A model generated the notes under the pieces. It was not told the origin of the DNA, ran no database searches, and was given only the letters and a program-made list of their open reading frames with translations. From contig NC_068982.1 of assembly GCF_001194135.2 (NCBI RefSeq), positions 128,650,906-128,714,905 on the forward strand: a DNA stretch of 64,000 bases. The letters are read 5' to 3'. The DNA is from Octopus bimaculoides. Its lineage: Eukaryota. Of the stretch, positions 5,440 through 64,000 are shown one piece after another. Positions within the stretch are counted from its first letter, which is position 1; the number at the start of each line of letters is the position of its first letter. The position numbers were made by a program, and so were the translations under genes.

Positions 5440-5444
5440 ATATG

Positions 5445-5478
<34 letters not shown>

Positions 5479-7863: not shown

Positions 7864-7907
<44 letters not shown>

Positions 7908-11632: not shown

Positions 11633-11665
<33 letters not shown>

Positions 11666-16269: not shown

Positions 16270-16311
<42 letters not shown>

Positions 16312-25300: not shown

Positions 25301-27950
25301 ACAACACAACGTTTAAAAGCTGTTATAATTCTTCTTAGAACTATTCCCCATCTATCCATTTTAGTAGGAAGTATTTTAAAAGAAAACTATCAGATATTAC
25401 AAAACTTACTGAATGGACTCTTTGGAATAACAGCATCTGATATCAAAGGATCAGATTTTCCAACAGAATTTACTGTAGAGATTCTGAAGAAATATTCTTG
25501 ATTTTCCTTCAATGATTGTGCACAATAACTTGTGGTAGTTGATGGTACTTTAGCAATTGTAGTCCAAGAGGATTTCCAGCTTTCCCTTTTATCTATGATA
25601 TATGAAATAATAGGAGAACCACCATCGTGTTCACTGGGTTTCCATGAAAGAGTCAAATATGTTCTTTGAATATCACTGAAAACAACTGGTCCAATTGGTG
25701 GGGATGGTTTTTCTGAAAAAGATAAATTAATTAATCAAGTTCCAATTATACAGATTCACAGCAATAACTGACAACATCTGTTGATTTGATTTATTTCTAT
25801 TGGTTCATGGCATTCAAAATAATTTCACTAATTAATATTAAATTGCTTCTAAGAAAAAAAATAACAAAATTTTAAGCAATTTGAAATAAGTACAAATCTG
25901 AACAAATTTCCTGGAAAAAGTTTTAATAAAATTCAATCTTCACTTCTTTTAATATTTGTATTTATATTAGGATTATATAATAATACAAAGAAAGTAACTG
26001 AACAATTGAATATTACATACCAGCTTCCTTTTGAGGTACAATAGCAGATGTAATTTCTGCACGTTCTCCGGTACCAACTTTATTCTGGGCTGAGACAGCG
26101 AAAAAGTAAGGAACACCAGTTTTTAAGAAATCAGCTTTGTAATATTCTTCACCAAATTTGGTTGTTGCAATCTTGTTCCATTTTGTAGATCCTTCTTCAC
26201 GCATTTCTATAATATAATTTGTAATTTTGGATCTTCCATCCTCTTTTGGTGGTTTCCAGTCCATGACAACATAATCTAATCCCACTCTTGTTGTTCTTAA
26301 GTCAACAGGACTTCCAGGTACAACTATTAAATTAAACAAAATAAAAATAATGAAATAACAAAAAGACTTAAATTGTTATTTATGAAATAATAAACCAGAA
26401 TATTAAAAATATATATTTCTTTTATTGAAACAATAAAGTAACATTTTAGAAATAAGCTAATTTTTAATTATAATAATTTACTTTCAAAATTAAGAATAGA
26501 AATGAATATATACCTATATTTTTGTGAGGTTGTACAGGTTCTGCTGACTCTAATGGCTGACTTACTCCTTCTTCATTAAATGCAGAAATTCTGAAATAAT
26601 ATTCGGTGTCATCTCTAAGGTCAAAAACAGTTAATTTGGTTGTTTTACCATCAGTTTCACCAACTTTGACCCATGTAGGTCGAGTTTTAGCTCTCATTTC
26701 AATGACATAGCCAAGCAATGGAGACCCTCCATCTGATCTTGGTGGATTCCAAACAACATCACAGAACCTATCTGATACATTATCATATACCACTGGTCCC
26801 AGTGGAGATGTTGGTTTACCTAAAATATCAAGAAAAATTATTTTTAAAAATTATAAAAAAAATAATGAGAAAATTGATAGAAATAAATGTACAAAATTGA
26901 ACATTATAGAATATTTCAAATAGTGAAAACCTACCAAATGGACTTTTGATCTTAGTTGTTAAATCAGTAACAAGAGGATCACTGTTACCAACTCTATTGA
27001 CAGCAGTTACTCGGAAATCATATTCAGTGTCTTCAGTCAAGTCTTTCATATTATAAGATGTTATATTTGCAGATACGCGATCAATTTGACTCCAGAATGA
27101 TCGAATAGACTCTTTCTTTTCAAGTATATAACCTGTAAGAGGTGAGCCACCATCATCTTCAGGAGCGTTCCAGCTTATACTGGCAGAGTTTCTGAGGACA
27201 TCAAATACTTTGATAGGACCTCTTGGTATGGATGGAATAGCTGAATAAATAAATATGAGAAAGAAACCATAAATATTAATATAAAGTTAAAAAATATATA
27301 TAAACAAGAACAGAAAGATGGAAAAACTATTTTGTACTATACTACATTTCTGATATTATTTTGCTTAAAAACATATATCTACATGAAAAACATACTTTAA
27401 TGAATTTTAAGCTTATAAAATTATGAACTACTTAATATATGCAATTTTAATTATGTTCTTGAAATTAAATAAGAAAAAAATATACCTAAAGGTCGTTTTG
27501 GTGTAACTGCATGATCAGCATCACATGGTTTGCTCAAGCCTACTGAATTTTCAGCACAGACAGAGAAATAGTAATTAACATTTTCTCGCAGAGCTTTTAC
27601 AGTGTATGTATGTTCGTATGCACTGACTGAAGTTATTTTCTCTCGGTCTTCATATATGTCAAAACGTTTATAAATTATGTAGTTGGTAATCTTAGATCCA
27701 CCATCTGAAATAGGTGGTCTCCATTCTAAAACTGCAAAATCTGGTCCTATTTTGGTAGCTCTTAAGTGAATAGGAGGCTCTGGGATATCTGAAATTGAAA
27801 AGAAGTAATAGTGAATTAACAAGAAAAATATACATTTATTTATGTCTAATAAACTCTTTGTCTATTTCTTTCTTTCTCTCTCTCCATATGCCCACACATA
27901 TATACATATATTTATGAACATACATTTTATACAAGCACATATATTCATAC

Positions 27951-27985
<35 letters not shown>

Positions 27986-27995
27986 NNNNNNNNNN

Positions 27996-28030
<35 letters not shown>

Positions 28031-31000: not shown

Positions 31001-31709
31001 CTGAAATTGGCAGGCTTTTCTGGAGGAGCTTTTAAAAAGAGAAAAGAAATGTAATGAATATTTGTCATACATCAAATGAAAATGTTTAAGAAAGAGGATT
31101 TTTGGCTTCAAGGATATTTTTAGTCAATCAAATTTATAACCTTAATAGGAAAAGTCATGCATGTCAATGAAAAGTTTTTTTTTGAAAAGACAAAGGAGGG
31201 AACTCTGAAATTTAAATGAACTAAAAATTAAATGATGGTATGCAGTGCAGACAAAATCTGATATTTGGTAAACATGATGATGATTCTAGACATGTTTCAG
31301 TCATATACCTCCTCAGCAAACCATAATCTAACACAAACCACAGAATCATTTCAACTGATTACCATTTCTTCTGACTTGCAATATTAAGTATATAAGACAA
31401 GACTTAACTCTATATTTTTCATCCAGAAGGCTCCTTTCAGAAACTTTCCAATGATACTTTAAATAAACTGAACATTAATATTATGAAAATAACTAAATAC
31501 TAATTTGTTGAAATCCAGCCTCTCCCAGTGTAGCAAAAATAAACAGAGGTAAGATGATAATGCTAATGATGATATTTCTCTGGCAAGCACTCAGCATACA
31601 CTGTAAAGTGGTTGGCATTAAGAAGAGCATCCAGCCATAGAAATCAAGCCAAATCAGACTGGAACCTGGTGGATATCAGCATGGAAAACAAACGTTGAAG
31701 ATAATGATG

Positions 31710-31749
<40 letters not shown>

Positions 31750-34700
31750 CAAGTATATTGTTCAAGTGTTTTCAGCTATAATTTTTTCTGTTACATTTTA
31801 AAGGGATATATTTAAGGGTCAGTTTAATTGGTGGTATTGTATTGTATTGCTCTCCAACCCATACCGACATAGGAGAAGAAGATATGACTCAAATGCTGCT
31901 GCTGCCAATGATAATGGTATATAAATCCTTTCATAAAAATTAGTGTCATCTAATCTAAAAAATATTTTACTTTAGGTGTGTCTATTAGAAGATTCTGTGA
32001 AATTCTGATAATTTTCTATTCTTGTTCTCTTTAAGGTAATTTACATATATGGTATTATATAGTAATGGCTTGGAAAATAAATAAGAATGATAAGAGAGTA
32101 TTTACTTAGTTCCCTCATTGGTTTGACAACATCAGTTGAAACAAGAGGCAAACTTCGTCCTTCAGCATTGACAGCAACCACACGGAAGAAATATTCCAGT
32201 GATTCAATCAAATCTGTGGCTTTGAATGAAGTTGTCTTAGGTGGCACCCTGCCAGCAGTTGACCATGTTGTTCTTGTAGCAGTCCTGTATTCAACAATAT
32301 ATTCTTTGAGTTCACATCCACCATCACTGAGAGGTGGCTTCCATTCTAATTCAGCTGAATCTTTAGTAATGTTGCTTATAATCAATGGACCCTCAGGAAC
32401 AGATGGAACATCTAAAAAGAAATTAAATATAAATACAGTGTTAATATTTCAAATAGATTCAGTAAGAATATTTTTAATCATCTCTTTTAATATCAGCCCA
32501 CCCGTGTCCTATGATAGAAACTTTTGGTTTTAAAGTGATCTAAAATAAAACCTTCCTTTAAAATTTCATGTTAATTTATCTTCCAGACACCAGATTTCAA
32601 AATTAATTGCAACTAAAGTCAATGTATTTCAACAAGAAATATGGTAACAAAAAAAGGGTTAATAAATAAGTGTAGTTTCTAACTTGATATTTTATCACAC
32701 TTTTATTTATGATTAAATTAATTAAAAATTAAAATAAAGAGAAAAATACAAAAACCTTTATCAAGAATTCTGATAATAATACTCACTGAATGGGCTCTTT
32801 GCTGTAGTAGCTGCTTCCGTTTCTAATGGTTGACTCTGTCCAAGCATATTCTCAGCAATGACTCTGAATAGATATTCATTTTTCTCATATAGATTAGTGC
32901 AGCACACTTCTAATGTACTTGCTTCAACTTTTTCAACTCTCGACCAAATTAATGATTTAGGAGTTTTCTTTTCAACTTGGTAGAACATAACTGGAGAACC
33001 ACCATCATCCTGAGGTGGTTTCCATCTTAGACTGATTGAAGTGCGCTGTACGTCAACAATTTCAATGGGTCCAGTAGGCATTGAAGGAACAGCTGAAAGA
33101 TAAGAGTAGTCTATTTTCAAACAAGTCAATAATAAAGATATCGTAATTATTATTGCAAAGATGTTTTTTTTATAGATATAAAAAATGATTATTTTATTTC
33201 TTCAGTGAGTGTAGAAGCCTGCTCCACTTTTGTTTTTAGAGTGGTCAATACATCACACTGTTTGGCTGAACATTGCCTCTGAGCCATGAATGAATTTAGC
33301 AAATGTAAGAATGTAGACTAAGTTTCTGATGGAACGTCATCGTGATCTGACTGCATGCCTGCATTCTCTACACTTCTCTAAATGCTAAAAACAGTAATAA
33401 AAAAAAAAACTAATCCTGCTGAATACTCTTCCTTCTACTTCTCTAACATTCATAGACTCCAATCTAACCTAAATCTCATTACAAACATTGAAATTTAGTT
33501 CTAAACCAAAATTTGACACACATATATATATATCTTTGCTTTGTCTCCATATATCTTAAGGAGCTTATCATGTTTTTGTTTTCACTTCCATGAAACTTTA
33601 TGTAACACGAGGAGCTAAGGCAACCTGTTAATATATATATATATATATCAATGATTTTAATGCTACTATATTTAAAAAGCTGACTTAAGTTGATCTATGA
33701 AGGATTCAATTCTCAATAAAATACTTACTTGCTTCACGTTGAGTGATAACAGAACCAACGGTTTCACATGGTTTTCCCATACCAGCTTTATTTTCAGCTG
33801 AGACAGAGAAGTAATAACCAACATTCTTTTCCAGATTAGTTACTTTGAATGATGTATCTAAACCTTCAACAACCATCAGACGTTCCCATTCATCCTTCTT
33901 GTCTTTTCGCTTTTTAACAGTATATTTCAGAATCTTAGAACCACCATCACTCTTTGGTGGTCTCCATTCAAGGCAGACATAATTTTCACCAATTTGGCTA
34001 GCTCTTACATTAACTGGTGGTCCAGGTACATCTATAAGGCAAAATGAAAATAATTTTTATTTATTTGTAAATCAATAAAAATATAAATATTAAGAACTTT
34101 CTATAAACCATTTTGCATTCAATTTAATTTCAGAAACAATTACGTCATAATTTTATCATATTAGCAATTAATTGCTCATGAATTTTCAGGTAATATTTCA
34201 ATTATGTAGACATCCATCGTAAATTTAGAAATATATCATATTTACTCATGTATAAATCATACAATTTTATATTTGATTTTAACTGAAAAAACTAGGGTGC
34301 AATCTATGCAGAGAGCAAAGTTATAAGTTTAAGGGAAAAATTTTGTACCAAGATTTATTACTAAATTAGGGGTATGACTCATAAGTAAATACAGTGAATG
34401 TGGTATTCTATTTTTGAACAATTTTAGTTAAAAGTCAACAAATAAAGACAGACAAGAAAGAATTTTCAATCCTTAAACTATAACTTACGTATTTCTCGAG
34501 AAGGTATTGTTGCTTCAGTTGTCTCTAAAGGTGGACTCTGTCCTTCTTCATTGACAGCAATGACACGGAAGTAATATTCAGTTCCTTCAGCTAATCCAAG
34601 AACTCTATAAACATTAACATTAGCTTCAACTTCTGCAGCATTTAACCAACTAGGTCGGGTTGCAGATTTGTATTCAATAATATATTTGGTAATTGGACTG

Positions 34701-46700: not shown

Positions 46701-48389
46701 TCACTGCAATGACTCGGAAATGGTATGAAGTTTTCTCTTGGAGATTCTTTACAATGCATGTTGTAACATCACCACTGACTCTTTCTCCCTTTGACCAGAA
46801 GCGAGCAGATTCATGACGTTTTTCTATGATGTAGCTAGTAATAGGAGCACCTCCATCATCAGTTGGTGCTTTCCATTTAATGCCAATAGAATTACGTTTT
46901 ACATCAGTCACTGTCAAAGGACCAATTGGTTTGGCTGGAACCACTGTATATGATAAAAAAGGTAACATATTAAAAAGATTTTAACAGAAAATTATTTCAG
47001 TTTACTTTTTTAGCATTGATAGTAAAGAAAAGGAGAAAATACTTTGTCAACATAATATATATAATTTAAAGACTTGTGAACTTTTATATTATTTTAAAAA
47101 CATATGTTCACACACACACACACCCTCACGAACAATACACATAAGAATATCATCCTCATCAATTTAGCATTGTTTTCCATGTTGGTATAGATGGTATGGT
47201 ATGACAAAATCCAAGAAGTTGAGGACCATATATACACAAATAAATGTATACACAAATAAATGTATATTCACAAATAAATGTATAAAATTCAATTATATAC
47301 TATATAGTAGAAACTAGAATACTTACGTAATCCTCGCTTGGTTTTGACTGGTTTTGTCATTTCACAAAATTCACCTTTACCAAGACTATTTTCAGCACAG
47401 ACAGCAAAGTAATAATCCATGTCCTCTTCAAGACGAACAGCTCGGCAATATGTATCATAAGCAGAAACTTTAGCAAGTTTTTGCCAGTCTCCAGGCTTAA
47501 ATGCAGATATTTGCAAATGATAGTTAATTATTGCAGAACCGCCATCAGATTTAGGTGCATCCCATTCCATTTCAACAAAATCTTCACCGACTCTGCTGGC
47601 TCTCAGATCTACTGGAACTCCAGGCAAAGCTGAAGAAGATAAACACAAACAGATATCAATTTTGAACTTGATAACCAAATAAATGAACGTTTTAAACAAC
47701 TAAATTTTATAAACTATGAGTAACAAAAACAAAAGATAAATTATGAAAATGCATTTTACCTAATGTTCTCATTGGTTTAACAATTTCTGTTGAAACTAAG
47801 GGCCGGCTTGGTCCTTCATCATTGACAGCAATAACACGGAAGAAATATTCATTACCCTCCAACAGGTTTGGAACAGTGTATTTTGTAGATTTTGCATCAA
47901 CCATTCCAGCTTTGGACCATGTCGATCTTGTACTAGTCCTGTACTCAATGACATAACCAGTAAGTGGAGTACCACCATCTTTTTCTGGAGATTCCCATTC
48001 CAAGTCAGCAGAATCTATGGTAACATTGCTTACTTTCAGTGGGCCAACAGGAGCAGATGGAACATCTACATTAAATATAAAATTGTATAAATCAATAAGA
48101 GATGTTTACATTAAAAGCAGAATTGGCACATGTGTGAAAAAGTTTGAGATGAATGAAATCCTGTCAATGAAGAATTTATTGTAGAACAAAATATTTTAAT
48201 ATTTTATACCTTTTATCATTTTATAATTCCATCTCAAAATAAGACAAAAGGGAATGGCATGGCTGTATATTTAAGAAGGTTGCTTCCCAACGATGTGGTC
48301 TTGGGTTCAGCTTTGCTGTATGACACCTTGGGCAAGTGTCATTTACAATAGCACCAGGTTGACTAGAGTCTTGTGCGTGGATATGGTAA

Positions 48390-48451
<62 letters not shown>

Positions 48452-57400: not shown

Positions 57401-60400
57401 CACTTACTTTTCTCTCTGGAAGGTATCGTAGATTCTGATGTCTCCAAGGGTGGACTTTCTCCTTCCTCATTGACAGCAATCACACGGAAGTAATATTCTG
57501 TACCCTCGACTAAACCTGTAACTCTGGCAACAGTAGATTTGGCATCAACTTCTTCTGCTTTGTTCCAAGACATGCGTGCAGCAGATCTTACTTCAACAAT
57601 ATATTTAGTGATTGGAGTGCCTCCATCACTGTCAGGAGCTCTCCATTCAAGATCAACATAGTCATAAGAGACCTTGGTAACTTCAAGGGGCCCTTTAGGA
57701 CGAGATGGTACACCTAAAAACAAATAAAGAAAGATATTAAGAGTTGTTTTGAAATTTTATTCAAAAATATGAATCTGCAATACAACAACATTCATTTTTC
57801 CAATATTACAAATATTGAGGTGTTCAATAAAAAAAAAAATCATTTTAACAGCCCGTCTCAGTCTTTTACCCTATGCATGTATCATTTGGTAAATTATATT
57901 AAATAATCAGTAAAAATTAATATTTTTATCAATAAAAAGAAACTGATTTATAGTCATAATTTCTTCTGATTATATACTCATTTCTAAACAAGAACCATAC
58001 AATAACAGGAAGCTAACAAAGAAAACAAAACTAAAGAATATATAAAAAATGATTATCAATGAGAAGCAAAATATATGACTTACTGAATGAGCTCTTAGCC
58101 ATTGTTGAAGCATCAGTCTGTAAGGGATCACTGTGACCAATTTTATTGATTGCTGTAACTCTGAAGTCATATTCACAGTTCTGTCTCAGATCTTCAACAC
58201 GGTAGTTGGTCACTGAGGGTGCTACCTTAGCCACATTGTTCCAGTATTGTCTATTAGCTTCTTTCTTCTCAATAATGTAACCAGTGAGAGGACTACCTCC
58301 ATCATCTTCTGGAGCTTTCCAGGAAATGGAAATAGATGTTTTCTCAATATCATAGGTTTTCAGAGGACCAATTGGTTTCGATGGTTTTTCTAAAAATACA
58401 AAACAGTACACAATGATAGAATAATGTCTCTCAAGTTTTACTCACATCAAATACCAAGAAAGTTTAAGATCTATAGACAAAAATTACAGAGATATCAAAT
58501 ATCTTACCAAGAGATNNNNNNNNNNNNNNNNNNNNNNNNNNNNNNNNNNNNNNNNNNNNNNNNNNNNNNNNNNNNNNNNNNNNNNNNNNNNNNNNNNNNN
58601 NNNNNNNNNNNNNNNNNNNNNNNNNNNNNNNNNNNNNNNNNNNNNNNNNNNNNNNNNNNNNNNNNNNNNNNNNNNNNNNNNNNNNNNNNNNNNNNNNNNN
58701 NNNNNNNNNNNNNNNNNNNNNNNNNNNNNNNNNNNNNNNNNNNNNNNNNNNNNNNNNNNNNNNNNNNNNNNNNNNNNNNNNNNNNNNNNNNNNNNNNNNN
58801 NNNNNNNNNNNNNNNNNNNNNNNNNNNNNNNNNNNNNNNNNNNNNNNNNNNNNNNNNNNNNNNNNNNNNNNNNNNNNNNNNNNNNNNNNNNNNNNNNNNN
58901 NNNNNNNNNNNNNNNNNNNNNNNNNNNNNNNNNNNNNNNNNNNNNNNNNNNNNNNNNNNNNNNNNNNNNNNNNNNNNNNNNNNNNNNNNNNNNNNNNNNN
59001 NNNNNNNNNNNNNNNNNNNNNNNNNNNNNNNNNNNNNNNNNNNNNNNNNNNNNNNNNNNNNNNNNNNNNNTGAAAATCTGAACACAAAATTCTAATGAGA
59101 AATAGATTATTACTCACCAATCTTCCTCACTGGTTTTGTGACATCAGTAGATTCAAGTGGTTTACTTTGTCCTTCAGCATTAACAGCAAAGACACGGAAA
59201 TGGTAACTTGTGTCTTCTGTAAGATTTGGTACTGTAAATGTGGTAGTTTTCTCATTAACAGTGCCTGCTTTAGTCCAGAAGGTTCTGGAATCTACTCTGT
59301 GTTCAATAATGTATCCAGTTATTGGTGTACCACCATCATTGGCAGATGGTTTCCAGCTCAAGTCAGCAGAATTATTGGTGACATTTGTGATCTCCAATGG
59401 ACCAACTGGTGCAGATGGCACATCTAAGAAATAAATAGAAAATATATATAATATAACACTCAGTATATTGCTGTTATTGATAAATATCAATCAAAATTCA
59501 GTTGGCTCATTATTTTGCCTTTTCAATGAAAATACTTTTGTTATTTCAATTATTTTAATGTAACATTTTGTTTTACTATTAAAAGAAAATTTCAAGAAAT
59601 ACATTCAATATACAATAACTAAACTTACCAAATGGACTTCTGGCCATTGTAGCATCCCTAGTTTCCAAAGGTTCACTCTCTCCAATTTTGTTTTCAGCAA
59701 TCACTCTGAAGTGATACATGGTTCTTTCTTGGAGATCCCTAACACAATAATCTGTGATGTCAGCACGAACTTTCTCAACCTTTGACCAATATCGAGCAGA
59801 CTCGGGACGTTTTTCTATGATGTATCCAATAATTGGAGAACCACCATCATCAGATGGTGCTTTCCATTTGATGCTGATAGATTTACGCTGGACATCGGTA
59901 ACAGTAAGAGGACCAATTGGTTTGGATGGAATCACTGAAAATAAATTTATAATTTATATAAACATCTTTCTTTTAACACTTCTGTCTACTTTTAACCAGA
60001 GTATAATTTCAAATATACATGATATTCTAATTTCAAGTATAAGTTTATTTTTCTGCAAATATTCAAGTGAAAATACTTACAAAGTCCCTTCTTTGTAGTG
60101 ACTGGTTTCGATGTTTCAGTAGCTTCACCTTTTCCAAGTTTGTTTTCAGCACATACAGAGAAATAGTAGTCCATATCTTCTTCAAGTCTAGTGGCTTTAC
60201 AGAATGTATCATAAGCTCCGACAGTTGCCAGTTTAGTCCAGTTTCCTAATGTTTGTGGAGATATTTCAACATGGTATTTAGTAATTGGTGTTCCTCCATC
60301 TGATTTTGGTTGATTCCACTCAAGTTCAACAAAGTCTTCACCAACTCTGCTAGCTCGGACATTGACAGGTGGTCCTGGTAGAGCTAGAAATGAAATAATA

Positions 60401-63400
60401 CATATAAGTTCCATGCAAGCAAAAGAATAAAAATGATATTGTAGAAACATTTTTTGTTGTGGTATTAAAAATGTGTTTCATACTTTTTACTCTGTACATT
60501 TATGTATGACGAAGTAGATGCAAACTGCCACCATGAAGAGTCTTTGTTCATCTCCGTAATCAATGAGAATATTACAAACTGACAGGTTTTTTTGCAACTT
60601 GCTATGCTGATTTCAAATTCTATTGAAAACAAGGATTCCTTCATCTGTTGATAGATGTAATTAATAATCTGTTCTACTAAAGGCACAAGGCCTGAAATTT
60701 TGGAGGAGGGGACTAGTCAATTACATCAACTTCAGTATTTCACTGGTACTTAGTTCATTGACCCCAAAGGGGTGAAAGGCAAAATAAACCTTGACAGAAT
60801 TTTAACCCAGAACATAAAGACAAACAAAATGCTGTGCTGCATCTTGCCTGGCATGCTAACAATTTTGTCAGCTTGCTGCCTCAGATATTATTAATAATGT
60901 TAAGCAATTGCTACAATAGAGAGAAGTAAATTATCAATAGAAGAAAATACTTTCAAATTTTATGAAGAATACATTGCTTGATAATGAATATATTTAAATA
61001 TTTCATCATTGTTTTAACATTCACATTTTGATGCTTGCATAAGACAGAATTAGTTGAGATATATTTTCTATGGCTAGATGTTCTGCCTTTTGCCAACTCT
61101 CACTTATTTCAAACATAATATTTCCCCATCATTGGATGAGGAGTGTTCAGTTCAAGAATATAACCTCTTTAGTTTAAAGTTGAGATAAATACAAACCATT
61201 TTTAGTAACTTATCCTGATTTGACAGTGTCATGATTGCGTGTATGTTCTTGTGGAGATAAAATGAACTATTGTCACATACAGGACAGGAGGCTCCTGACT
61301 GAGATACCACACAGTGGTACTCGATCTCCAGAAGTAAACTTCTTAACTGCATAGCCATACCAGTAACTATTCTATGAAATCTATATTATTTAAATACAAT
61401 TTAGTATATGTGTGTGTGGGGGGGTGTATGTACTTAAAATAAAATCATGAGAAAAATAGTGAATATTTTAAAGTTATTCTGAATCACTAATACAAATCGT
61501 GTATAACTTTTATCGTGTATATTATCAATATTTAAATATTGTTTCCATGATAGCAATATAAAACAAAGTGTATACACAACATTGTGAAATTTTACAAAAG
61601 AAGATATGTTACTGATTAAAAACACTAAAATCCTTATCAAATAAAACTTACTGAGATCTCATCTCACATTCGTTTTGTAATAAGTACAATTTTAATGAAT
61701 GAATCATCAACTATGTATAATTTAAATCCTTACCCAAATCCCTCATTGGTTTTGTAACATCAGTTGATTCCAGAGGATGGCTGTATCCTTCAGCATTGAC
61801 AGCAATAATTCTGAAGTAATATTCTGTTCCTTCCATCAAATTGCTGCATGTATATGTTGTCTGTTTTGGGTCCACTGTTGCTGCCTTTGACCATGTGGTT
61901 CTGGTAGCTGTTCTGTATTCTACCAAATATCCTGTAATGGAAGTTCCACCATCATTTTCAGATGGTTTCCATTCAAGATCAGCTGAGTTGTAGGTGACAT
62001 TTGAGATAACCAGTGGGCCAACAGGTGGAGATGGCACATCTGAAAATAGACAAATGAAAATAGGAGAAATAAAATATATGAAAAGTGATAAGCGTTACTT
62101 TAGATTAAAATGGAGAATAAGCTGAATAGTATACAATTATGTGAAATGTCAATTCATTGGTTTATTTTGTTTTTGCTTACTAAATTTTTTTAACATACCT
62201 ATACAGTATGATGAAAGTTATAAATAGAGTGAAGAACCTATTACTTTCAAAGTTTTTATAAGTTCATTGTAATGAGGCAAAAGAGAAGATGAAAATTGAA
62301 AAAGATCACTTATATTGGCCATATTTAGAACAATATTCTTATTGTCAAAGCAGATTTAATAGAATTTAAGGTAAATGTTATTTTAATCAGCAAAATGTGT
62401 TTTGGGGAAAAAAATGTATAATTCATTATAATGAAATGCAAGTGGAATATAATTTGTTTGAAATAAATTTATATTTGCTGTTCACTACTCTAAAATACTC
62501 TTATACTTTTTTTTTAAAGCTGTCATGTTTCAATTACTCCTATTTTACCATGCTTTAAAATAGCTTAGCCTCAATTTGAACTTCATATTTAAGCAATACC
62601 TTTTCCTTCTTTCTCATGAAAAAGGAAAATGAAACTAAAAGTAATGCCAAAACTGATCTATCCTTTAATATATCAATTTAATAAAATTGATATATTAAAG
62701 GAGAGAGAGGAATGTTCAGTCCAAGAATATAATCTCTTTAGTTCAAAGTTTGTGTAAATATAAATCATCTTCAGTAACTTATCCTAATTTGATAGTGCCA
62801 TATTTGTATGTATGTTCTTGTGGAGATAAAATGAGCTATCTTGAGATAATGTGATCAGATGTCCCTTGGTATTTCTGCTCAATTTCTGTTAACTACATCT
62901 TACATAGTCTGATAAGATTTCAGGTAGTCTCTTATGGTTAAATTATTTTAATCTATACTTGACTTCAATTCACATTTAATTCAACATTGCTGAAATTTTA
63001 CCAGAGTGTTTAATCCACCAAACATATTTATCTTATTTTCAAGTTTTTTATGCTGTGTATTTTCAATGCTTTTTTGGTTGTGTGCTCTTCTTATCCTCCA
63101 CTGTTCAATATTTTCAATTTATCCATTGTATTTAATTGCTTTCTTATCTGTTCTCTTTTGGTAACATCAGAGCCTATTTTCTATGTTAAGGGTGCTTTCC
63201 TACATTAATTCTATCTACATCAGATTTTCAGTAACATATTCTGAATCCTCTCATAAGTTCCTTATTTTCATGTTCCTCTTTCTTATTTATAATTCAATAC
63301 AATGATACAGTAGCAAATTTATGGGACAACTAGCATGGTTACATTAATTATTTTGCATGCCCTATTTCAATTTCTGAGTATTGCTGAATAGTGGAAGCTA

Positions 63401-64000
63401 TAGTCACATAGAGAACCGAACAATATCTACTGACTCTATTTTTCCTTTGGCTTGTAATTTCTGGCAATCTTCTTCCATCTGGATGATATGATGGACTCTA
63501 AGATAGATCGGAGGGCCTAAAGATAGATATTTTATTCCAGGGTTAAACCACTGTCAAGTTGGAGAGGAAGGTAAGGGGGGAAAGAGAGGTGTCACAATCC
63601 AGTAAATTTACTGAATAGTAAGTGACAGTAATCTTCACTACACAATATTTTGTAAGCACAAAAGATTTTATTTTATTTATATATCAACAGTAAAATATCA
63701 ACACCATACTCACAACAAAAATAGAACTAAAATATTTAAAAAGAAACTTACCAAATGGACTACGAGCTAAAGTAGCTGCGTCTGTCTCAAGAGGTGGACT
63801 CTGTCCAATCTTGTTGACTGCAATAACTCTGAAGAGATATTCATTCTTCTCATAAAGGCCTTTAACACACATTTCATATGTTGAAGCATCCACTTGATCT
63901 ACCCTACTCCATATATGGGCTTTAGTATGCTTCTTCTCAACATTGTAAGCAATAATTGGTGAACCACCATCATCCTTTGGTGCCTTCCATTTAATACTGA
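1716..64000 (-). CDS. Giant FN3-only titin/twitchin-family protein gene (3' part; 70 FN3 exons + terminal exon; 5' end lies beyond the window)
   Basis: 68 complete or partial exons translate in one phase-1 frame to sarcomeric-type FN3 domains (PxxP-GPL...W.pP..DGGspI..Y.iE...W...L.e...Y.FRV.A.N..G.s.pl). GT-AG sites were read at each boundary. No Ig, kinase, signal peptide or TM segment is seen. Orthology cannot be assigned from sequence alone. Confidence 0.93.
2535..2750 (+). mobile_element. Mariner-derived MITE
   Basis: TIRs gctgaaaagttcctggctt / aagccaggaacttttcagc, TA context. The internal remnant translates [17 protein letters not shown], like the mariner transposase C-terminus. Confidence 0.8.
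2797..2833. repeat. (GA)n microsatellite next to N-gap 2782-2795
   Basis: Direct. Confidence 0.9.
4262..4405 (-). mobile_element. (GAT)n-tailed retroposon 3' fragment
   Basis: (cat)n-ttaatgtccattttccatgct...ggctggatgcccttcct; same family recurs at 7533, 28126, 29455, 31585, 44905. Confidence 0.7.
4548..4853 (-). CDS. FN70 exon (last FN3)
   Basis: 306 nt; [22 protein letters not shown]. Confidence 0.95.
5163..5693 (+). mobile_element. tRNA-derived SINE with internal (TG)n/(TA)n expansion
   Basis: Head ggcatagctgtgtggtaagaaacttgcttccc...gagttcaatc (A/B-box-like), tail cagcatggccacagtctaatgacagaaacaag; microsatellite 5321-5480. Confidence 0.75.
6115..6414 (-). CDS. FN69 exon (SR6 position 6)
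   Basis: 300 nt; [23 protein letters not shown]. Confidence 0.95.
6955..7251 (-). CDS. FN68 exon (SR6-5)
   Basis: 297 nt; [22 protein letters not shown]. Confidence 0.95.
7533..7650 (+). mobile_element. (GAT)n-tailed retroposon family fragment
   Basis: cagtggttggcattaggaagtgcatccagccatagaaacc...cctggtgcagc; opposite orientation to the 4262 copy. Confidence 0.65.
8093..8398 (-). CDS. FN67 exon (SR6-4)
   Basis: 306 nt; [22 protein letters not shown]. Confidence 0.95.
8697..8996 (-). CDS. FN66 exon (SR6-3)
   Basis: 300 nt; [20 protein letters not shown]. Confidence 0.95.
9218..9517 (-). CDS. FN65 exon (SR6-2)
   Basis: 300 nt; [22 protein letters not shown]. Confidence 0.95.
9640..10003 (-). 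mobile_element. Near-complete tRNA-derived SINE
   Basis: Reverse complement of the 5163/48255 family from head (ttaccacacagccactc) to tail (ggccatgctggagcaccacc, tttgtttca). Confidence 0.85.
10137..10442 (-). CDS. FN64 exon (SR6-1)
   Basis: 306 nt; [23 protein letters not shown]. Confidence 0.95.
11069..11365 (-). CDS. FN63 exon (SR6-6)
   Basis: 297 nt; [25 protein letters not shown]. Confidence 0.95.
11676..12510 (-). mobile_element. Degraded RTE-clade LINE reverse-transcriptase fragment
   Basis: Frameshifted pieces [24 protein letters not shown] (YxDD), [40 protein letters not shown]. Confidence 0.88.
12659..12964 (-). CDS. FN62 exon (SR6-5)
   Basis: 306 nt; [21 protein letters not shown]. 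Confidence 0.95.
13338..13640 (-). CDS. FN61 exon (SR6-4; absent from ORF track)
   Basis: 303 nt, hand-translated open: [31 protein letters not shown]. Confidence 0.95.
14171..14464 (-). CDS. FN60 exon (SR6-3)
   Basis: 294 nt; [20 protein letters not shown]. Confidence 0.95.
14623..14925 (-). CDS. FN59 exon (SR6-2)
   Basis: 303 nt; [22 protein letters not shown]. Confidence 0.95.
15268..15463 (-). mobile_element. Partial piggyBac-like (TTAA) MITE
   Basis: Reverse-complement homologue of 42138-42365, ending aaagggttaa. Confidence 0.7.
15575..15880 (-). CDS. FN58 exon (SR6-1)
   Basis: 306 nt; [23 protein letters not shown]. Confidence 0.95.
16380..16682 (-). CDS. FN57 exon (SR6-6)
   Basis: 303 nt; [25 protein letters not shown]. 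Confidence 0.95.
17020..17325 (-). CDS. FN56 exon (SR6-5)
   Basis: 306 nt; [21 protein letters not shown]. Confidence 0.95.
17999..18298 (-). CDS. FN55 exon (SR6-4)
   Basis: 300 nt; [23 protein letters not shown]. Confidence 0.95.
18900..19199 (-). CDS. FN54 exon (SR6-3)
   Basis: 300 nt; [20 protein letters not shown]. Confidence 0.95.
19354..19659 (-). CDS. FN53 exon (SR6-2)
   Basis: 306 nt; [21 protein letters not shown]. Confidence 0.95.
19876..20181 (-). CDS. FN52 exon (SR6-1)
   Basis: 306 nt; [23 protein letters not shown]. Confidence 0.95.
20487..20789 (-). CDS. FN51 exon (SR6-6)
   Basis: 303 nt; [25 protein letters not shown]. Confidence 0.95.
21207..21512 (-). CDS. FN50 exon (SR6-5)
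   Basis: 306 nt; [21 protein letters not shown]. Confidence 0.95.
21801..21910. repeat. 40-bp minisatellite, ~2.7 copies, in a G/T-skewed tract (~21605-21960)
   Basis: Units start 21801, 21841, 21881: (t/c)gtgttattt.att(a/g)g....tgattgtat. Confidence 0.8.
22220..22522 (-). CDS. FN49 exon (SR6-4)
   Basis: 303 nt; [21 protein letters not shown]. Confidence 0.95.
22982..23281 (-). CDS. FN48 exon (SR6-3)
   Basis: 300 nt; [21 protein letters not shown]. Confidence 0.95.
24069..24374 (-). CDS. FN47 exon (SR6-2)
   Basis: 306 nt; [21 protein letters not shown]. Confidence 0.95.
25410..25712 (-). CDS. FN46 exon (SR6-1; first of the 6-mer zone)
   Basis: 303 nt; [23 protein letters not shown]. Confidence 0.95.
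26021..26323 (-). CDS. FN45 exon (SR9-6-like)
   Basis: 303 nt; [26 protein letters not shown]. Confidence 0.95.
26514..26819 (-). CDS. FN44 exon (SR9-5-like, diverged)
   Basis: 306 nt; [21 protein letters not shown]. Confidence 0.95.
26935..27240 (-). CDS. FN43 exon (SR9-4)
   Basis: 306 nt; [23 protein letters not shown]. Confidence 0.95.
27486..27788 (-). CDS. FN42 exon (SR9-3)
   Basis: 303 nt; [33 protein letters not shown]. Confidence 0.95.
28126..28615 (-). mobile_element. (GAT)n-tailed retroposon carrying a 66-bp tandem array
   Basis: (cat)n tail at 28126, family core to ~28290, then ~5 units of 66 bp (atg anchors at 28358, 28424, 28491, 28557). Confidence 0.75.
28667..28972 (-). CDS. 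FN41 exon (SR9-2)
   Basis: 306 nt; [21 protein letters not shown]. Confidence 0.95.
29455..29690 (+). mobile_element. (GAT)n-tailed retroposon fragment
   Basis: ctctgtaaagtggttggtgtcaggcaacccatccag...ccatgccagcatagaaaac followed by (gat)n. Confidence 0.7.
29696..29917 (+). mobile_element. Complete tRNA-derived SINE
   Basis: A-box-like tggcagaatcgttagc, B-box-like gagttcaaatt, core cactggggtcgatgtaatcgactt, tail gggtaataaagaaat; CpGs retained. Confidence 0.85.
30110..30415 (-). CDS. FN40 exon (SR9-1; absent from ORF track)
   Basis: 306 nt, hand-translated open: [23 protein letters not shown]. Confidence 0.95.
30726..31028 (-). CDS. FN39 exon (SR9-9)
   Basis: 303 nt; [26 protein letters not shown]; AAG acceptor, gttagt donor. 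Confidence 0.93.
31585..31710 (+). mobile_element. (GAT)n-tailed retroposon fragment
   Basis: cactgtaaagtggttggcattaagaagagcatccagccatagaaatc. Confidence 0.65.
32106..32411 (-). CDS. FN38 exon (SR9-8)
   Basis: 306 nt; [21 protein letters not shown]. Confidence 0.95.
32787..33092 (-). CDS. FN37 exon (SR9-7)
   Basis: 306 nt; [23 protein letters not shown]. Confidence 0.95.
33729..34031 (-). CDS. FN36 exon (SR9-6; absent from ORF track)
   Basis: 303 nt, open: [36 protein letters not shown]. Confidence 0.95.
34489..34794 (-). CDS. FN35 exon (SR9-5; absent from ORF track)
   Basis: 306 nt, open: [22 protein letters not shown]. Confidence 0.95.
35497..35802 (-). CDS. FN34 exon (SR9-4)
   Basis: 306 nt; [23 protein letters not shown]. 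Confidence 0.95.
35908..36305 (+). mobile_element. Degenerate SINE
   Basis: ggcatggctgagtagttaag...caggttcaatacc...ttgggcaagtgt head; ccatgccagtatggac tail; boundaries approximate. Confidence 0.55.
36335..36637 (-). CDS. FN33 exon (SR9-3)
   Basis: 303 nt; [33 protein letters not shown]. Confidence 0.95.
36765..37070 (-). CDS. FN32 exon (SR9-2)
   Basis: 306 nt; [21 protein letters not shown]. Confidence 0.95.
37288..37590 (-). CDS. FN31 exon (SR9-1; absent from ORF track)
   Basis: 303 nt; [24 protein letters not shown]. Confidence 0.95.
38377..38679 (-). CDS. FN30 exon (SR9-9)
   Basis: 303 nt; [26 protein letters not shown]. Confidence 0.95.
38860..39165 (-). CDS. FN29 exon (SR9-8)
   Basis: 306 nt; [21 protein letters not shown]. 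Confidence 0.95.
39346..39651 (-). CDS. FN28 exon (SR9-7)
   Basis: 306 nt; [23 protein letters not shown]. Confidence 0.95.
40050..40410 (-). mobile_element. Degraded Tc1/mariner (mariner-type) transposase fragment
   Basis: [36 protein letters not shown]...[14 protein letters not shown] resembles the mariner ISYG.C..IL...L.M....AK.VPRLLT.EQK...NDP.F..RIIT segment (by eye). Confidence 0.65.
40478..40780 (-). CDS. FN27 exon (SR9-6)
   Basis: 303 nt; [36 protein letters not shown]. Confidence 0.95.
41127..41570. repeat. Interspersed repeat ending in a fold-back inverted repeat (arms 41325-41441 / 41468-41570)
   Basis: Core agaggtgaattattcaaaccccaaagaattcctctcaa matches its inverted copy at 37/38; arms end tgagtagcccat / atgggctactca; 26-nt loop. 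Confidence 0.85.
42138..42365 (+). mobile_element. Complete piggyBac-like MITE
   Basis: TTAA|CCCTTTAGCATT ... AATACTAAAGGG|TTAA: TTAA target duplication and TIRs; ends 16 bp from the FN26 donor. Confidence 0.85.
42382..42687 (-). CDS. FN26 exon (SR9-5)
   Basis: 306 nt; [22 protein letters not shown]. Confidence 0.95.
42946..43332 (-). mobile_element. Young full-length tRNA-derived SINE with 13-bp TSD
   Basis: TSD agaggttgaaagt at 42933-42945 and 43333-43345; head (rc) tgtggaggcgcaatggcccagtggttagggc...ggtttcaattccc; CpG-rich; (CAA)-type tail. Confidence 0.9.
43477..43782 (-). CDS. FN25 exon (SR9-4)
   Basis: 306 nt; [23 protein letters not shown]. Confidence 0.95.
43811..44022 (-). mobile_element. 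SINE (29696 family) with (TAT)n tail just upstream of the FN25 acceptor
   Basis: tgattctgccagcatgcc head (rc), ccccagtattcaactgatacttattttattgaccctgaaagg core. Confidence 0.75.
44308..44610 (-). CDS. FN24 exon (SR9-3)
   Basis: 303 nt; [33 protein letters not shown]. Confidence 0.95.
44905..45120 (-). mobile_element. (GAT)n-tailed retroposon fragment
   Basis: catcatttaatgtctgttgtccatgatggcatgggttggatgg...tagatacctttcctaatgacaaccac. Confidence 0.65.
45167..45472 (-). CDS. FN23 exon (SR9-2)
   Basis: 306 nt; [21 protein letters not shown]. Confidence 0.95.
46638..46943 (-). CDS. FN22 exon (SR9-1)
   Basis: 306 nt; [23 protein letters not shown]. Confidence 0.95.
47327..47629 (-). CDS. FN21 exon (SR9-9)
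   Basis: 303 nt; [26 protein letters not shown]. Confidence 0.95.
47760..48065 (-). CDS. FN20 exon (SR9-8)
   Basis: 306 nt; [21 protein letters not shown]. Confidence 0.95.
48255..48630 (+). mobile_element. tRNA-derived SINE with internal (GT)n
   Basis: ggcatggctgtatatttaagaaggttgcttccc...gggttcag...caccttgggcaagtgtc head; ggtggtgccccagcatggccac tail. Confidence 0.75.
48991..49296 (-). CDS. FN19 exon (SR9-7)
   Basis: 306 nt; [23 protein letters not shown]. Confidence 0.95.
50320..50622 (-). CDS. FN18 exon (SR9-6)
   Basis: 303 nt; [36 protein letters not shown]. Confidence 0.95.
50832..51137 (-). CDS. FN17 exon (SR9-5)
   Basis: 306 nt; [22 protein letters not shown]. Confidence 0.95.
51433..51738 (-). 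CDS. FN16 exon (SR9-4)
   Basis: 306 nt; [23 protein letters not shown]. Confidence 0.95.
51859..51952 (-). CDS. FN15 exon (SR9-3), mostly hidden in N-gap 51863-51952
   Basis: Only the 3' stub CTT G|gtaagat is visible; position predicted by the 9-mer register; the gap is too short for a 303-nt exon. Confidence 0.7.
52058..52363 (-). CDS. FN14 exon (SR9-2)
   Basis: 306 nt; [21 protein letters not shown]; 305/306 identical to FN5. Confidence 0.95.
53192..53497 (-). CDS. FN13 exon (SR9-1)
   Basis: 306 nt; [23 protein letters not shown]. Confidence 0.95.
53997..54320 (+). mobile_element. Possible degraded Penelope-like GIY-YIG endonuclease relic
   Basis: One frame with 2 stops: [17 protein letters not shown]...E*IH...SVTKHL...[21 protein letters not shown], resembling VIY..C..C...YIG...R..EH...KEA.HI.K..P..N; by eye only. 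Confidence 0.42.
54763..55065 (-). CDS. FN12 exon (SR9-9; absent from ORF track)
   Basis: 303 nt; [26 protein letters not shown]. Confidence 0.95.
55260..55562 (-). CDS. FN11 exon (SR9-8)
   Basis: 303 nt; [21 protein letters not shown]. Confidence 0.95.
56065..56146. repeat. Direct-inverted-direct micro-duplication with 14-bp perfect hairpin
   Basis: ttgtcctaatatca-atg-tgatattaggacaa (56081-56111) between 34-bp direct copies at 56065 and 56113. Confidence 0.85.
56498..56803 (-). CDS. FN10 exon (SR9-7)
   Basis: 306 nt; [23 protein letters not shown]. Confidence 0.95.
56980..57282 (-). CDS. FN9 exon (SR9-6)
   Basis: 303 nt; [36 protein letters not shown]. Confidence 0.95.
57408..57713 (-). 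CDS. FN8 exon (SR9-5)
   Basis: 306 nt; [22 protein letters not shown]. Confidence 0.95.
58084..58389 (-). CDS. FN7 exon (SR9-4)
   Basis: 306 nt; [23 protein letters not shown]. Confidence 0.95.
58508..58810 (-). CDS. FN6 exon (SR9-3), mostly hidden in N-gap 58516-59070 (upper end estimated)
   Basis: Visible stub A TCT CTT G|gtaagat (..SL-G), like the ..PL-G ends of FN24/FN42; register prediction. Confidence 0.72.
59118..59423 (-). CDS. FN5 exon (SR9-2)
   Basis: 306 nt; [21 protein letters not shown]. Confidence 0.95.
59629..59934 (-). CDS. FN4 exon (SR9-1)
   Basis: 306 nt; [23 protein letters not shown]. Confidence 0.95.
60081..60383 (-). CDS. FN3 exon (SR9-9)
   Basis: 303 nt; [26 protein letters not shown]. 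Confidence 0.95.
60670..60881 (-). mobile_element. Degenerate SINE (29696 family)
   Basis: ggcacaaggcctgaaattttggaggagggg...cactggtactta...attgaccccaaagg...catgctaacaattttgtcagc. Confidence 0.7.
61734..62039 (-). CDS. FN2 exon (SR9-8)
   Basis: 306 nt; [21 protein letters not shown]. Confidence 0.95.
63752..64000 (-). CDS. FN1 exon (SR9-7), truncated by window end
   Basis: ..[31 protein letters not shown]; donor gtaagt at 63751. Confidence 0.95.

Follow-up and report, generated by a model that had tools for sequence, protein, structure and literature searches.

The 64-kb window analysed here (the whole stretch of Octopus bimaculoides DNA above) encodes a chain of ~101-aa fibronectin type III (FN3) domains with no immunoglobulin (Ig) domain, kinase or spacer. 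Nine position-specific domain classes recur along most of this chain as a 3x3 super-repeat of about five units, as the initial annotation of the stretch had proposed. In formal terms, the arrangement is like the A-band super-repeats of titin. The domains are of the titin type; the repeat is built from FN3 domains only and has a period of its own.

The minus strand shows 68 FN3 exons between position 63998, where the window edge truncates the first of them, and position 4548 (Table 1). Each exon encodes one domain, measures 294-306 nt and is bounded by AG/GT splice sites, and all introns of the gene are in phase 1. With such symmetric exons, skipping of any one of them would leave the reading frame intact. 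The spliced product of FN16-FN70 is 5,570 aa long and contains zero stop codons. Counting FN6 and FN15, both unseen, the window encodes 70 domains or more, and a minimum of about 7,100 aa. It carries the 3' portion of a single giant gene, which probably belongs to the titin/twitchin (sarcomeric Ig/FN3) superfamily; the N-terminus and the 5' part of the gene lie outside the window. The domain numbering of the initial annotation was recovered and is used throughout. One intron holds a reverse-transcriptase fragment with 76-79% identity to Octopus vulgaris proteins.

Table 1. Positions of exons, units, assembly gaps and other features in the 64-kb window
Feature	Position	Strand	Remark
Unit 1 (FN1-FN9)	56980..63998	-	FN1 edge-cut; FN6 (class 6) unseen
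FN1	63752-63998	-	
FN2	61734-62039	-	
FN3	60081-60383	-	
FN4	59629-59934	-	
FN5	59118-59423	-	
FN7	58084-58389	-	
FN8	57408-57713	-	
FN9	56980-57282	-	
Unit 2 (FN10-FN18)	50320..56803	-	FN15 (class 6) unseen
FN10	56498-56803	-	
FN11	55260-55562	-	
FN12	54763-55065	-	
FN13	53192-53497	-	
FN14	52058-52363	-	
FN16	51433-51738	-	
FN17	50832-51137	-	
FN18	50320-50622	-	
Unit 3 (FN19-FN27)	40478..49296	-	complete; 914 aa
FN19	48991-49296	-	
FN20	47760-48065	-	
FN21	47327-47629	-	
FN22	46638-46943	-	
FN23	45167-45472	-	
FN24	44308-44610	-	
FN25	43477-43782	-	
FN26	42382-42687	-	
FN27	40478-40780	-	
Unit 4 (FN28-FN36)	33729..39651	-	complete; 913 aa
FN28	39346-39651	-	
FN29	38860-39165	-	
FN30	38377-38679	-	
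FN31	37288-37590	-	
FN32	36765-37070	-	
FN33	36335-36637	-	
FN34	35497-35802	-	
FN35	34489-34794	-	
FN36	33729-34031	-	
Unit 5 (FN37-FN45)	26021..33092	-	positions 8-9 already degenerate
FN37	32787-33092	-	
FN38	32106-32411	-	
FN39	30726-31028	-	
FN40	30110-30415	-	
FN41	28667-28972	-	
FN42	27486-27788	-	
FN43	26935-27240	-	
FN44	26514-26819	-	
FN45	26021-26323	-	
Downstream zone FN46-FN70	4548..25712	-	25 further FN3 exons
Probable last coding exon	1716..2314	-	199-aa tail; TAA stop at 1716-1718
Assembly gap	58516..59070	.	flanked by FN5 (class 5) and FN7 (class 7); expected FN6 site
Assembly gap	51863..51952	.	between FN14 (class 5) and FN16 (class 7); expected FN15 site
Assembly gap	42008-42065		(TA)n tract in FN26/27 intron (classes 8 to 9)
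Assembly gap	27986-27995		(TA)n tract in intron between classes 5 and 6, unit 5

All nine domain classes matched the Pfam fn3 family (PF00041) as single exons with 41-69 bits, at a cut-off of 25 bits, and FN19-21 gave three fn3-matched stretches. An AlphaFold model showed a seven-strand sandwich with a pLDDT of 93.6. When this model was used as a Foldseek query, titin A-band FN3 domains were matched at a TM score of 0.92, and the top 30 matches were all titin or myomesin. A phmmer search against solved structures returned titin (8g4l_bm, E = 8e-121; 8bnq_A, 1e-46), whereas receptor phosphatases and contactins reached no better than about 1e-17. Among PDB entries, the best matches were chains of the titin C-zone in structures of the cardiac thick filament, along with the FnIII tandem A84-A86 of titin; the octopus domain trio aligned colinearly with this tandem (E = 1e-46). 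Type A (FN22) corresponded to A84 and type C (FN27) to A86, and type B (FN23) also matched A84; matches of the trio to A77-A78 were inconsistent. One-to-one homology of the octopus types A, B and C with titin's FnIII types of those names therefore holds only in part. The domains are of the titin A-band type, and by sequence and structure matches alike they belong to the sarcomeric (titin-type) FN3 subfamily. Neither an Ig domain nor a kinase was found in the FN3 exons, the tail, the long introns or the other open minus-strand segments of at least 75 aa that were scanned. With neither in the window, the encoded protein is neither titin nor twitchin.

These matches also bear on whether the product might be secreted or belong to the extracellular matrix, in the manner of tenascin or usherin. 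Extracellular FN3-only architectures are common, N-x-T/S sequons are present in the B-type domains, and a signal peptide would be possible at the N-terminus beyond the window. Nevertheless, a secreted or matrix protein is improbable, as titin, myomesin and MyBP-C lead the matches by both sequence and structure, with FN3 domains of receptors and matrix proteins far weaker. In addition, titin-type motifs (W..P..DGGS.I..Y and Y.FRV.A.N) occur in all parts of the array, most domains carry unpaired, variable cysteines, and the tail has no hydrophobic stretch fit for a transmembrane segment.

The basic module of the array is a trio of FN3 types, A-B-C, with exon lengths of 306, 306 and 303 nt. This pattern runs across the 45-domain zone, where only two exons deviate, each by 3 nt. 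Mean domain identity in FN1-45 was 0.654 at lag 9, 0.595 at lag 18 and 0.592 at lag 27, with a sub-peak of 0.46-0.48 at lags 3, 6, 12, 15 and so on, and a background of 0.33-0.35 at lags that are not multiples of 3. Both the lag-9 peak, which stands against a background of 0.34, and the lag-3 sub-peak had been predicted from the recurrence of domain classes every nine exons. For 41 of the 43 visible domains of FN1-45, the best match lay at a multiple-of-9 lag. Shuffling domains within the A/B/C register gave a lag-9 mean of 0.511 (sd 0.015), and none of 5,000 shuffles reached 0.654. The lag-9 excess also persisted with unit 1 left out. As in the titin super-repeats, domains at equivalent positions are more alike than neighbouring domains.

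A class-by-class matrix resolved the superclasses A (1, 4, 7), B (2, 5, 8) and C (3, 6, 9), with identities of 0.48-0.67 within classes, 0.36-0.57 between sister classes and 0.27-0.45 between other classes. UPGMA cut at nine clusters merged classes 1+4 and 2+5+8, and did not recover all nine classes; the lag and nearest-neighbour analyses are the cleaner evidence for them. The class motifs listed in the initial annotation were all found again where it had placed them: SYDYVDLEW in FN8, 17, 26 and 35; ADHAV in FN24, 33 and 42; a K/D-rich C-C' loop in FN9, 18, 27 and 36; LYEK/LYEN in FN1, 10, 19, 28 and 37; and R[VI]GE[DN]F...KGL in FN3, 12, 21, 30 and 39. Net charge is about -5 in class 8 and about +3 in class 9, and class 8 evolves slowest, classes 9 and 3 fastest. 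The AB, CC' and EF loops account for 17 of 101 positions and contain 7 of the 12 most class-specific columns (Fisher p = 5e-4). In unit 5 the pattern decays at positions 8-9, where FN44 and FN45 share 42% and 37% identity with their lag-9 partners.

Units 2-5 are old duplicates. They differ by 35-48% at the protein level, dS among them is about 0.8 or more and often saturated, dN/dS is mostly 0.15-0.3, and the introns between units cannot be aligned. The unit-to-unit identities form a falling gradient of 0.85, 0.65, 0.62 and 0.55. Units 1 and 2 form a mosaic, with identities from 58% to 100% and dS from 0.01 up to saturation within this one pair. At the DNA level they resemble each other only in tracts of 263-484 nt, whose offsets differ. 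These data strongly imply patchy, exon-sized gene conversion, by which the two most 5' copies would have been partly homogenised. The history strongly implied for the whole zone begins with an A-B-C trio that tripled and whose members diverged into nine classes; tandem duplication of these nine exons as a block, up to about five copies, came next, and purifying selection has maintained the copies.

A repeat of this kind might also be produced by the assembly itself, through duplicated haplotigs or collapsed or expanded repeats. Four gaps fall within the super-repeat zone, and units 1 and 2 share patches of 98-100% identity and have gaps at homologous places. However, an artefact is hardly credible: the similarity of units 1 and 2 is limited to exons and short flanks at offsets of 6,436 to 7,254 nt, their introns are unrelated, and units 2-5 have diverged by 35-48% in protein with saturated dS. 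An assembly duplicate as the source of the likeness of units 1 and 2 was ruled out by the intron comparison.

The gaps at 27986-27995 and 42008-42065 have cost no exon, since consecutive classes stand on either side. Those at the FN6 and FN15 sites lie in non-repetitive sequence, within a block 94-98% identical between units 1 and 2, and one of their edges coincides to within 4 nt. The apparent intron between FN14 and FN16 is 319 nt long, 90 of them N, whereas the same class-5-to-7 span, including the class-6 exon, is 962-1,426 nt in units 3-5. Both gaps look like a repeat-induced assembly break and are no proof that the exons exist. As FN6 and FN15 are unseen, we infer the nine-register of units 1 and 2; because every intron is in phase 1, the frame is kept with or without a hidden exon in the gaps.

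The downstream zone, FN46-FN70, keeps the A-B-C triplet register, with identities of 0.35-0.39 at lags that are multiples of 3 and 0.30-0.34 at other lags; 9-periodicity was absent from it by the same lag-identity analysis. For 17 of its 25 domains, the best match in FN1-45 shared their A/B/C register (binomial p = 4e-4). Exon lengths here are less regular (294-306 nt). The probable last coding exon has a strong phase-1 acceptor (tattcttattcttcag), through which it can be spliced in frame to FN70. It encodes a hydrophilic tail of 199 aa rich in S, Q, Y and H, in which no Pfam family was matched and no kinase, Ig domain or hydrophobic segment was found. The same exon in a close relative is of equal length, with 87% amino acid identity and a pN/pS of 0.35, and by this comparison the C-terminal tail is under constraint.

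Titin A-band super-repeats comprise 7 domains (3+4) in the D-zone and 11 domains (3+4+4) in the C-zone, with Ig and FN3 domains mixed. The octopus gene shares with titin FN3 domains of the same sequence type (up to 41% identity, TM 0.92), one domain per phase-1 exon, sub-blocks nested in a super-repeat, short or absent linkers, and the closer resemblance of a domain to its counterpart one super-repeat away than to its neighbours. Octopus A-type domains also end in ..SPF/Y, which resembles the [N/Y]PF motif of titin inter-FN3 linkers (PMC10665226). The octopus domains are ~101 aa each, with no added linkers to lengthen their spacing. In contrast to titin, there are no Ig domains among the 68 visible domains, the period is 9 (3+3+3) and not 7 or 11, a unit would measure ~36 nm at titin spacing compared with 43 nm, and the FN3 array is followed by the S/Q/Y/H-rich 199-aa tail and not by a kinase or M-band Ig domains. 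The octopus super-repeat thus resembles those of titin on the thick filament and differs from them in make-up and period. It arose independently of titin's. The term 'convergent' used for it in the initial annotation suits the super-repeat organisation and is only half right, because the FN3 domains themselves are homologous to those of titin.

The nearest database matches are named 'twitchin-like'. With twitchin, projectin and UNC-22, giant proteins of invertebrate thick filaments, the octopus gene shares a three-domain basic module and probably an invertebrate muscle origin. Twitchin repeats an Fn-Fn-Ig module and carries an MLCK-like kinase close to its C-terminus, whereas the third member of the octopus trio (classes 3, 6 and 9) is an FN3 domain, the window holds no Ig domain or kinase, and a higher nine-domain period is present. 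Mytilus twitchin has 24 Ig domains, 15 FN3 domains and one kinase (PMC12040844). Spacer-free stretches of 8 to 15 consecutive titin-type FN3 domains, with 35-40% identity to the octopus domains, were found in uncharacterised proteins: a 'twitchin-like' protein of Lingula (P0001) and proteins of Lottia (LOTGIDRAFT_141638, P0023), Diadema (P0002) and Littorina (P0017), but their domains cannot be assigned to the nine octopus classes. The Lingula and Lottia proteins, both of which were tested, gave no clear lag-3 or lag-9 signal.

A closer comparison came from a contig (L001) of Logan run SRR11869394, from a species ~89% identical to that of the window in non-coding DNA. Its 12 FN3 domains are of the A, B and C types and follow one another as in the window; the C-C' loops of its C domains are basic and rich in K. 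It differs in that six domains are fused in one exon and the periodicity is purely threefold (0.585, 0.588 and 0.601 at lags 3, 6 and 9, with no lag-9 excess). The contig is orthologous to no part of the window and so stems from a paralogue or a different zone of the gene; its pure 3-periodicity means that the nine-fold level is not universal to zones or paralogues. A protein search with a spliced unit gave a best match of 40% identity (Lingula), with none above 1,600 aa among the matches listed, and giant orthologues seem to be absent from the protein index searched. When 1.8 billion representatives were searched with a profile, the matches included long titins, twitchins and FN3-run proteins, with lengths up to 7,602 aa; no orthologue was found there, nor any lag-3 or lag-9 signal among the matches tested. 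Exact look-up of ten window ORFs in a protein collection gave no match. In the literature searched, neither a giant muscle protein made of FN3 domains only nor a super-repeat of nine domains is described for molluscs or cephalopods.

The product may be an extended rod in which each domain adds about 4 nm. It would run along a muscle filament, with the myosin/paramyosin thick filament as the likeliest candidate, and act there as a scaffold or template. Such a scaffold role is plausible, with about equal weight for and against, the muscle assignment following from domain similarity only. By standard FN3 topology, the C-terminal linker of a domain forms the junction to the next one. The class-specific residues, which cluster in the AB, CC' and EF loops and in this linker, might fix the geometry of the junction or provide a binding surface, repeated every nine domains, about 36 nm, or about 72 nm for two units.

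The canonical filament periods are 14.5, 38.5 and 43.5 nm. Titin on the thick filament spans 3.98 nm per domain (PMC7427331), at which 3 octopus domains would measure ~11.9 nm, 9 domains 35.8 nm and 18 domains 71.6 nm; on this arithmetic, nine domains would equal none of the three periods. The earlier suggestion of three domains per 14.3-nm crown is not supported, as it requires ~4.8 nm per domain against the 3.98 nm of titin (PMC7427331). Its alternative, a ruler for the actin/tropomyosin thin filament at about 38.5 nm, comes closer, with nine domains of ~4.3 nm only ~7% above titin spacing. A thin-filament ruler is nonetheless very unlikely, as the required spacing exceeds the measured one, the closest relatives are thick-filament-bound regions of titin, and no nebulin-like or other actin-binding motifs are present. 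In molluscs, the paramyosin core repeats every 72.5 nm, with a sub-repeat of 14.5 nm (PMC12040844). A template of FN3 domains only, in paramyosin-cored molluscan muscle, whose nine-domain units are read pairwise against this 72.5-nm (5 x 14.5 nm) period, is conceivable as a long shot; the fit would require two units and amounts so far to numerology.

The nine-domain period would also be expected from plain block duplication of nine exons, and dN/dS below 1 from selection on the FN3 fold alone. That the periodicity is a mere footprint of such duplication, left unread in a generic FN3 rod (a spacer, elastic element or scaffold), is a serious possibility, if one that we do not favour. The identity gradient is typical of serial duplication with concerted evolution, the 25 downstream domains and the related contig show triplets only, and the period is absent from the other FN3-only relatives retrieved. 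Against this, class motifs and charges outlast the saturation of dS, rates of evolution differ consistently by position, class-specific sites gather at one pole of the domain, and domain length is strict in the super-repeat zone and not downstream, although none of these points is decisive.

Titin super-repeats are the textbook case of a domain pattern that mirrors a filament lattice, and repeats of this type have been regarded as a vertebrate (chordate) feature, with twitchin, projectin and Sallimus showing simple Fn-Fn-Ig or Ig patterns. The octopus gene represents a second, independently built, two-level super-repeat, made of FN3 domains only. To our knowledge, no protein that sets the length or pattern of thick filaments is known in molluscs. 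If the pairwise template were true, it would be an independently evolved invertebrate counterpart of the A-band ruler of titin. Should the period be merely a trace of duplication, the locus would still be a clean case of block duplication with exon-sized gene conversion. The gene thus offers a candidate for a periodic template on cephalopod thick filaments, along with probes for it in the form of class-specific epitopes that recur once per nine domains.

With about 32% G+C, the window is rich in AT and has abundant microsatellites, and its coding content lies on the minus strand, where open stretches of about 100 codons occur once per 0.4-2 kb. Sixty-eight FN3 exons, each encoding one domain of about 101 aa, were defined from 63998, where the window edge cuts the exon, to 4548. 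Acceptors are of the form ..YAG with a pyrimidine-rich tract, donors are GTAAG-like, and the introns are all in phase 1. When spliced, FN16-FN70 (numbered 5' to 3' along the gene) give 5,570 aa without a stop. The C-terminal tail of 199 aa, which looks disordered and matched no known family, is rich in Ser (14%), Gln (13%), Tyr (11%) and His (8.5%). In Logan runs SRR11869384-94, the tail exon had a single match, an ORF of equal length and 87% identity, on a contig 89% identical to window positions 2672-980, non-coding flanks included. The tail is a constrained coding exon, since pN/pS against this close relative is 0.35. A sequence in the exon, CAG/GTAACA, is a possible alternative donor that overlaps the stop codon. 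The product encoded here is at least about 7,100 aa long, with an N-terminus located past position 64000.

Coordinates of features in the window and in contig L001 of the close relative
Feature	Position	Strand	Context
C-terminal tail exon	1716-2314	minus	strong phase-1 acceptor at 2314 after FN70; TAA stop 1716-1718
LINE-type reverse-transcriptase fragment	11600-12559	minus (gene's orientation)	FN62/FN63 intron; weak Pfam RVT_1 match
10-N gap	11666-11675		adjoins (TA)n tract ending at 11665
Class-6 domain FN42	27486-27788		still FN3 (class-6 domains, 41-50 bits)
Gap	27986-27995		within (TA)n tract, intron between classes 5 and 6; hides nothing of consequence
Tandem repeat, G+C-richer	28325-28603		FN41/FN42 intron; 66/133-bp unit, about 4 copies, 73-80% identity
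Class-6 domain FN33	36335-36637		still FN3
Gap	42008-42065		within (TA)n tract, intron between classes 8 and 9; hides nothing of consequence
Class-6 domain FN24	44308-44610		still FN3
Gap	51863-51952		between class-5 and class-7 exons, unit 2; expected site of class-6 exon
Gap	58516-59070		between class-5 and class-7 exons, unit 1; expected site of class-6 exon
Six FN3 domains (A/B/C types)	L001 828-2687		single uninterrupted 1.8-kb exon, single-domain exons on either side

The initial annotation had proposed that domain classes recur every nine exons. With one placeholder domain assumed in each of two gaps (FN6 and FN15), its numbering and all five of its motif series were reproduced exactly, and the peak it expected at lag 9, with a sub-peak at lag 3, was seen. 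Mean pairwise identity in FN1-45 is 0.654 at lag 9, 0.595 at lag 18 and 0.592 at lag 27, against 0.46-0.48 at the remaining multiples of 3 and 0.33-0.35 at all other lags. The best match lies at a multiple of nine for 41 of the 43 visible domains, the exceptions being FN41 and FN44. Shuffling within the A/B/C register gave a lag-9 mean of 0.511 +/- 0.015, and none of 5,000 shuffles reached the observed value. The periodicity persists when unit 1 (FN1-9) is left out (0.593 vs 0.491 +/- 0.014 shuffled). The class-by-class identity matrix has two levels, namely nine classes defined by position within the unit (identity within class 0.48-0.67) and three superclasses, A (1, 4, 7), B (2, 5, 8) and C (3, 6, 9). 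Exon lengths cycle as 306/306/303 nt across the 45-domain zone, with two exceptions, each off by 3 nt. Downstream, FN46-FN70 retain the A-B-C register (best match in register for 17 of 25, p = 4e-4), with identity at multiples of 3 of only 0.35-0.39 and variable exon lengths (294-306 nt). No lag-9 excess was found in this zone, the value of 0.376 being unremarkable among multiples of 3.

FN6 and FN15 are unobserved because gaps occupy the expected class-6 sites of units 1 and 2. The surroundings of both gaps are non-repetitive and lie in a block 94-98% identical between the two units, and one edge of each gap matches the other's to within 4 nt. Between FN14 and FN16 the apparent intron has 319 nt, compared with 962-1,426 nt for the equivalent span in units 3-5. 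The picture resembles an assembly break brought about by the repeat, in which sequence was lost, and the two class-6 exons probably exist. As all introns are in phase 1 and every exon length is divisible by 3, the frame is intact with or without them. The four short gaps are ordinary assembly breaks; those at 11666, 27986 and 42008 lie in or adjoin (TA)n, and that at 2782 adjoins (AG)n. Long (TA)n, (TG)n and (AG)n microsatellites are common in the introns (e.g. 2782-2795, 5349-5466 and 48395-48450).

The only foreign element found was the LINE-type fragment, which is decayed, with frameshifts and stops, and is 76-79% identical to Octopus vulgaris hypothetical reverse-transcriptase proteins over one-third of its length, a similarity that suggests an octopod genome. 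The tandem repeat may be a satellite or belong to a SINE-like element, and gives rise to spurious plus-strand ORFs (28291-28644). Introns FN28/FN29 (39166-39345) and FN29/FN30 (38680-38859) are each exactly 180 nt. The former has no in-frame stop, so that FN28, intron and FN29 form a single 321-codon open frame (39784-38822); its retention would add 60 aa in frame, and its openness may be due to chance.

The units arose by block duplication. Units 2-5 are old duplicates on which purifying selection acts: most synonymous sites have reached saturation (dS about 0.8 or more), dN/dS generally lies at 0.15-0.3 and climbs to 0.5-0.7 in the last unit, which is decaying, and no alignment could be obtained between their introns. 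Identity between units declines 5' to 3', from 0.85 (units 1/2) to about 0.65, 0.62 and 0.55 for units 3, 4 and 5. Units 1 and 2 form a mosaic by dS, with 0.01 for FN5/14, 0.06 for FN1/10, 0.13 for FN7/16, 0.16 for FN4/13, 0.24 for FN8/17, 0.45 for FN2/11, 1.06 for FN3/12 and saturation for FN9/18. This mosaic is characteristic of gene conversion in exon-sized stretches. DNA similarity occurs only in tracts of 263-484 nt that surround exons and whose offsets vary from 6,436 to 7,254 nt, and a duplicated haplotig or assembly copy was rejected on these grounds. Several tracts have a dS below 0.18, the divergence between this species and the close relative; thus, some conversions may post-date that split.

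The main rival to a functional reading, and a plausible one, is that the nine-domain period is a mere footprint of duplication. Several properties are kept by position. Net charge is about -5 in class 8, +3 in class 9, -3.6 in class 3 and +2 in class 4; in units 2-4, class 8 evolves slowest and classes 9 and 3 fastest. Class 6 is without the Trp that opens the C' strand and is conserved in the other classes, and has an acidic C-C' loop (..ESEDDE.., ..ESLDDE..) and two to four cysteines. When the best class-separating columns were placed on the secondary structure of the FN19 model, seven of 12 fell within the 17 positions, out of 101, that make up the AB turn and the CC' and EF loops (Fisher p = 5e-4), one further in the C-terminal linker, and just one in the BC, C'E and FG loops together. 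In the standard FN3 topology, the AB, CC' and EF loops lie at the C-terminal pole, adjoining the following domain. On this basis, the SYDY, K-rich loop, LYEK and ADHAV motifs are probably junction features, which would fix the geometry between domains or make up composite sites at certain junctions, every nine domains.

By domain type, the gene is a member of the sarcomeric Ig/FN3 superfamily, as its best matches are to titin- and myomesin-type FN3 domains. All nine classes passed the Pfam fn3 threshold. Searched against PDB sequences, the A-B-C trio matched titin chains of cardiac thick-filament reconstructions (8g4l, E = 8e-121; 8q6t, E = 4e-117) and was colinear with the titin FnIII tandem A84-A86 (8bnq, E = 1e-46), whereas receptor and matrix FN3 proteins scored about 1e-17 or weaker. 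The predicted FN19 model (pLDDT 93.6) superposed on titin A-band FN3 domains with a TM of about 0.9, and its best 30 structural hits were all titin or myomesin. Neither an Ig domain nor a kinase nor any other family was detected in exons, tail or the further open segments scanned. The gene thus differs from titin, defined by Ig/FN3 super-repeats of seven or 11 domains and a kinase, and from twitchin/projectin, defined by Fn-Fn-Ig and a kinase. It follows a titin-like super-repeat logic, arrived at independently with homologous FN3 domains and differing in composition and period. In the literature searched, no FN3-only giant built on a nine-domain super-repeat was found described, whether from molluscs or from other groups, and a 2025 survey of connectin/titin evolution, covering Octopus sinensis, makes no mention of one; automated models for such genes surely exist.

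A second contig from the same run set, L001 (SRR11869394), has 12 FN3 domains running B-C-A-B-C-A and so forth. It is purely 3-periodic, with equal identities for lags 3, 6 and 9 (0.585, 0.588 and 0.601). Not being an orthologue of the window, it is a paralogue or another zone of the gene. Its six-domain exon means that one domain per exon is not universal in the family; loss of introns or retro-copying of a segment could account for it. More distant FN3-run proteins (Lingula, Diadema, Lottia, Littorina and others) share 35-40% identity, and no 3- or 9-periodicity was found in those tested, Lingula and Lottia among them. No true orthologues of the super-repeat zone were recovered.

The FN3 chain has no spacers, and its A-type domains finish in ..SPF/Y, resembling the [N/Y]PF inter-FN3 linker that keeps titin tandems extended (PMC10665226); an extended rod is the natural expectation. 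At the 3.98 nm per domain of titin on the thick filament (PMC7427331), three, nine, 18 and 45 domains would span 11.9, 35.8, 71.6 and 179 nm respectively. The earlier suggestion of a molecular ruler, in which three, six and nine domains equal one, two and three myosin crowns, is not supported, for it needs 4.8 nm per domain, 20% above titin's measured value. The thin-filament mapping offered instead needs about 4.3 nm and has no other support. Molluscan paramyosin cores have an axial period of 72.5 nm with a 14.5-nm sub-repeat (PMC12040844), and its closeness to two units (about 72 nm) is a numerical coincidence of possible interest. The protein would presumably be expressed in muscle and bind filaments, and any ruler function is conjectural. 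It is best read as a putative thick-filament-associated scaffold, which would display class-specific junction surfaces at periodic intervals.
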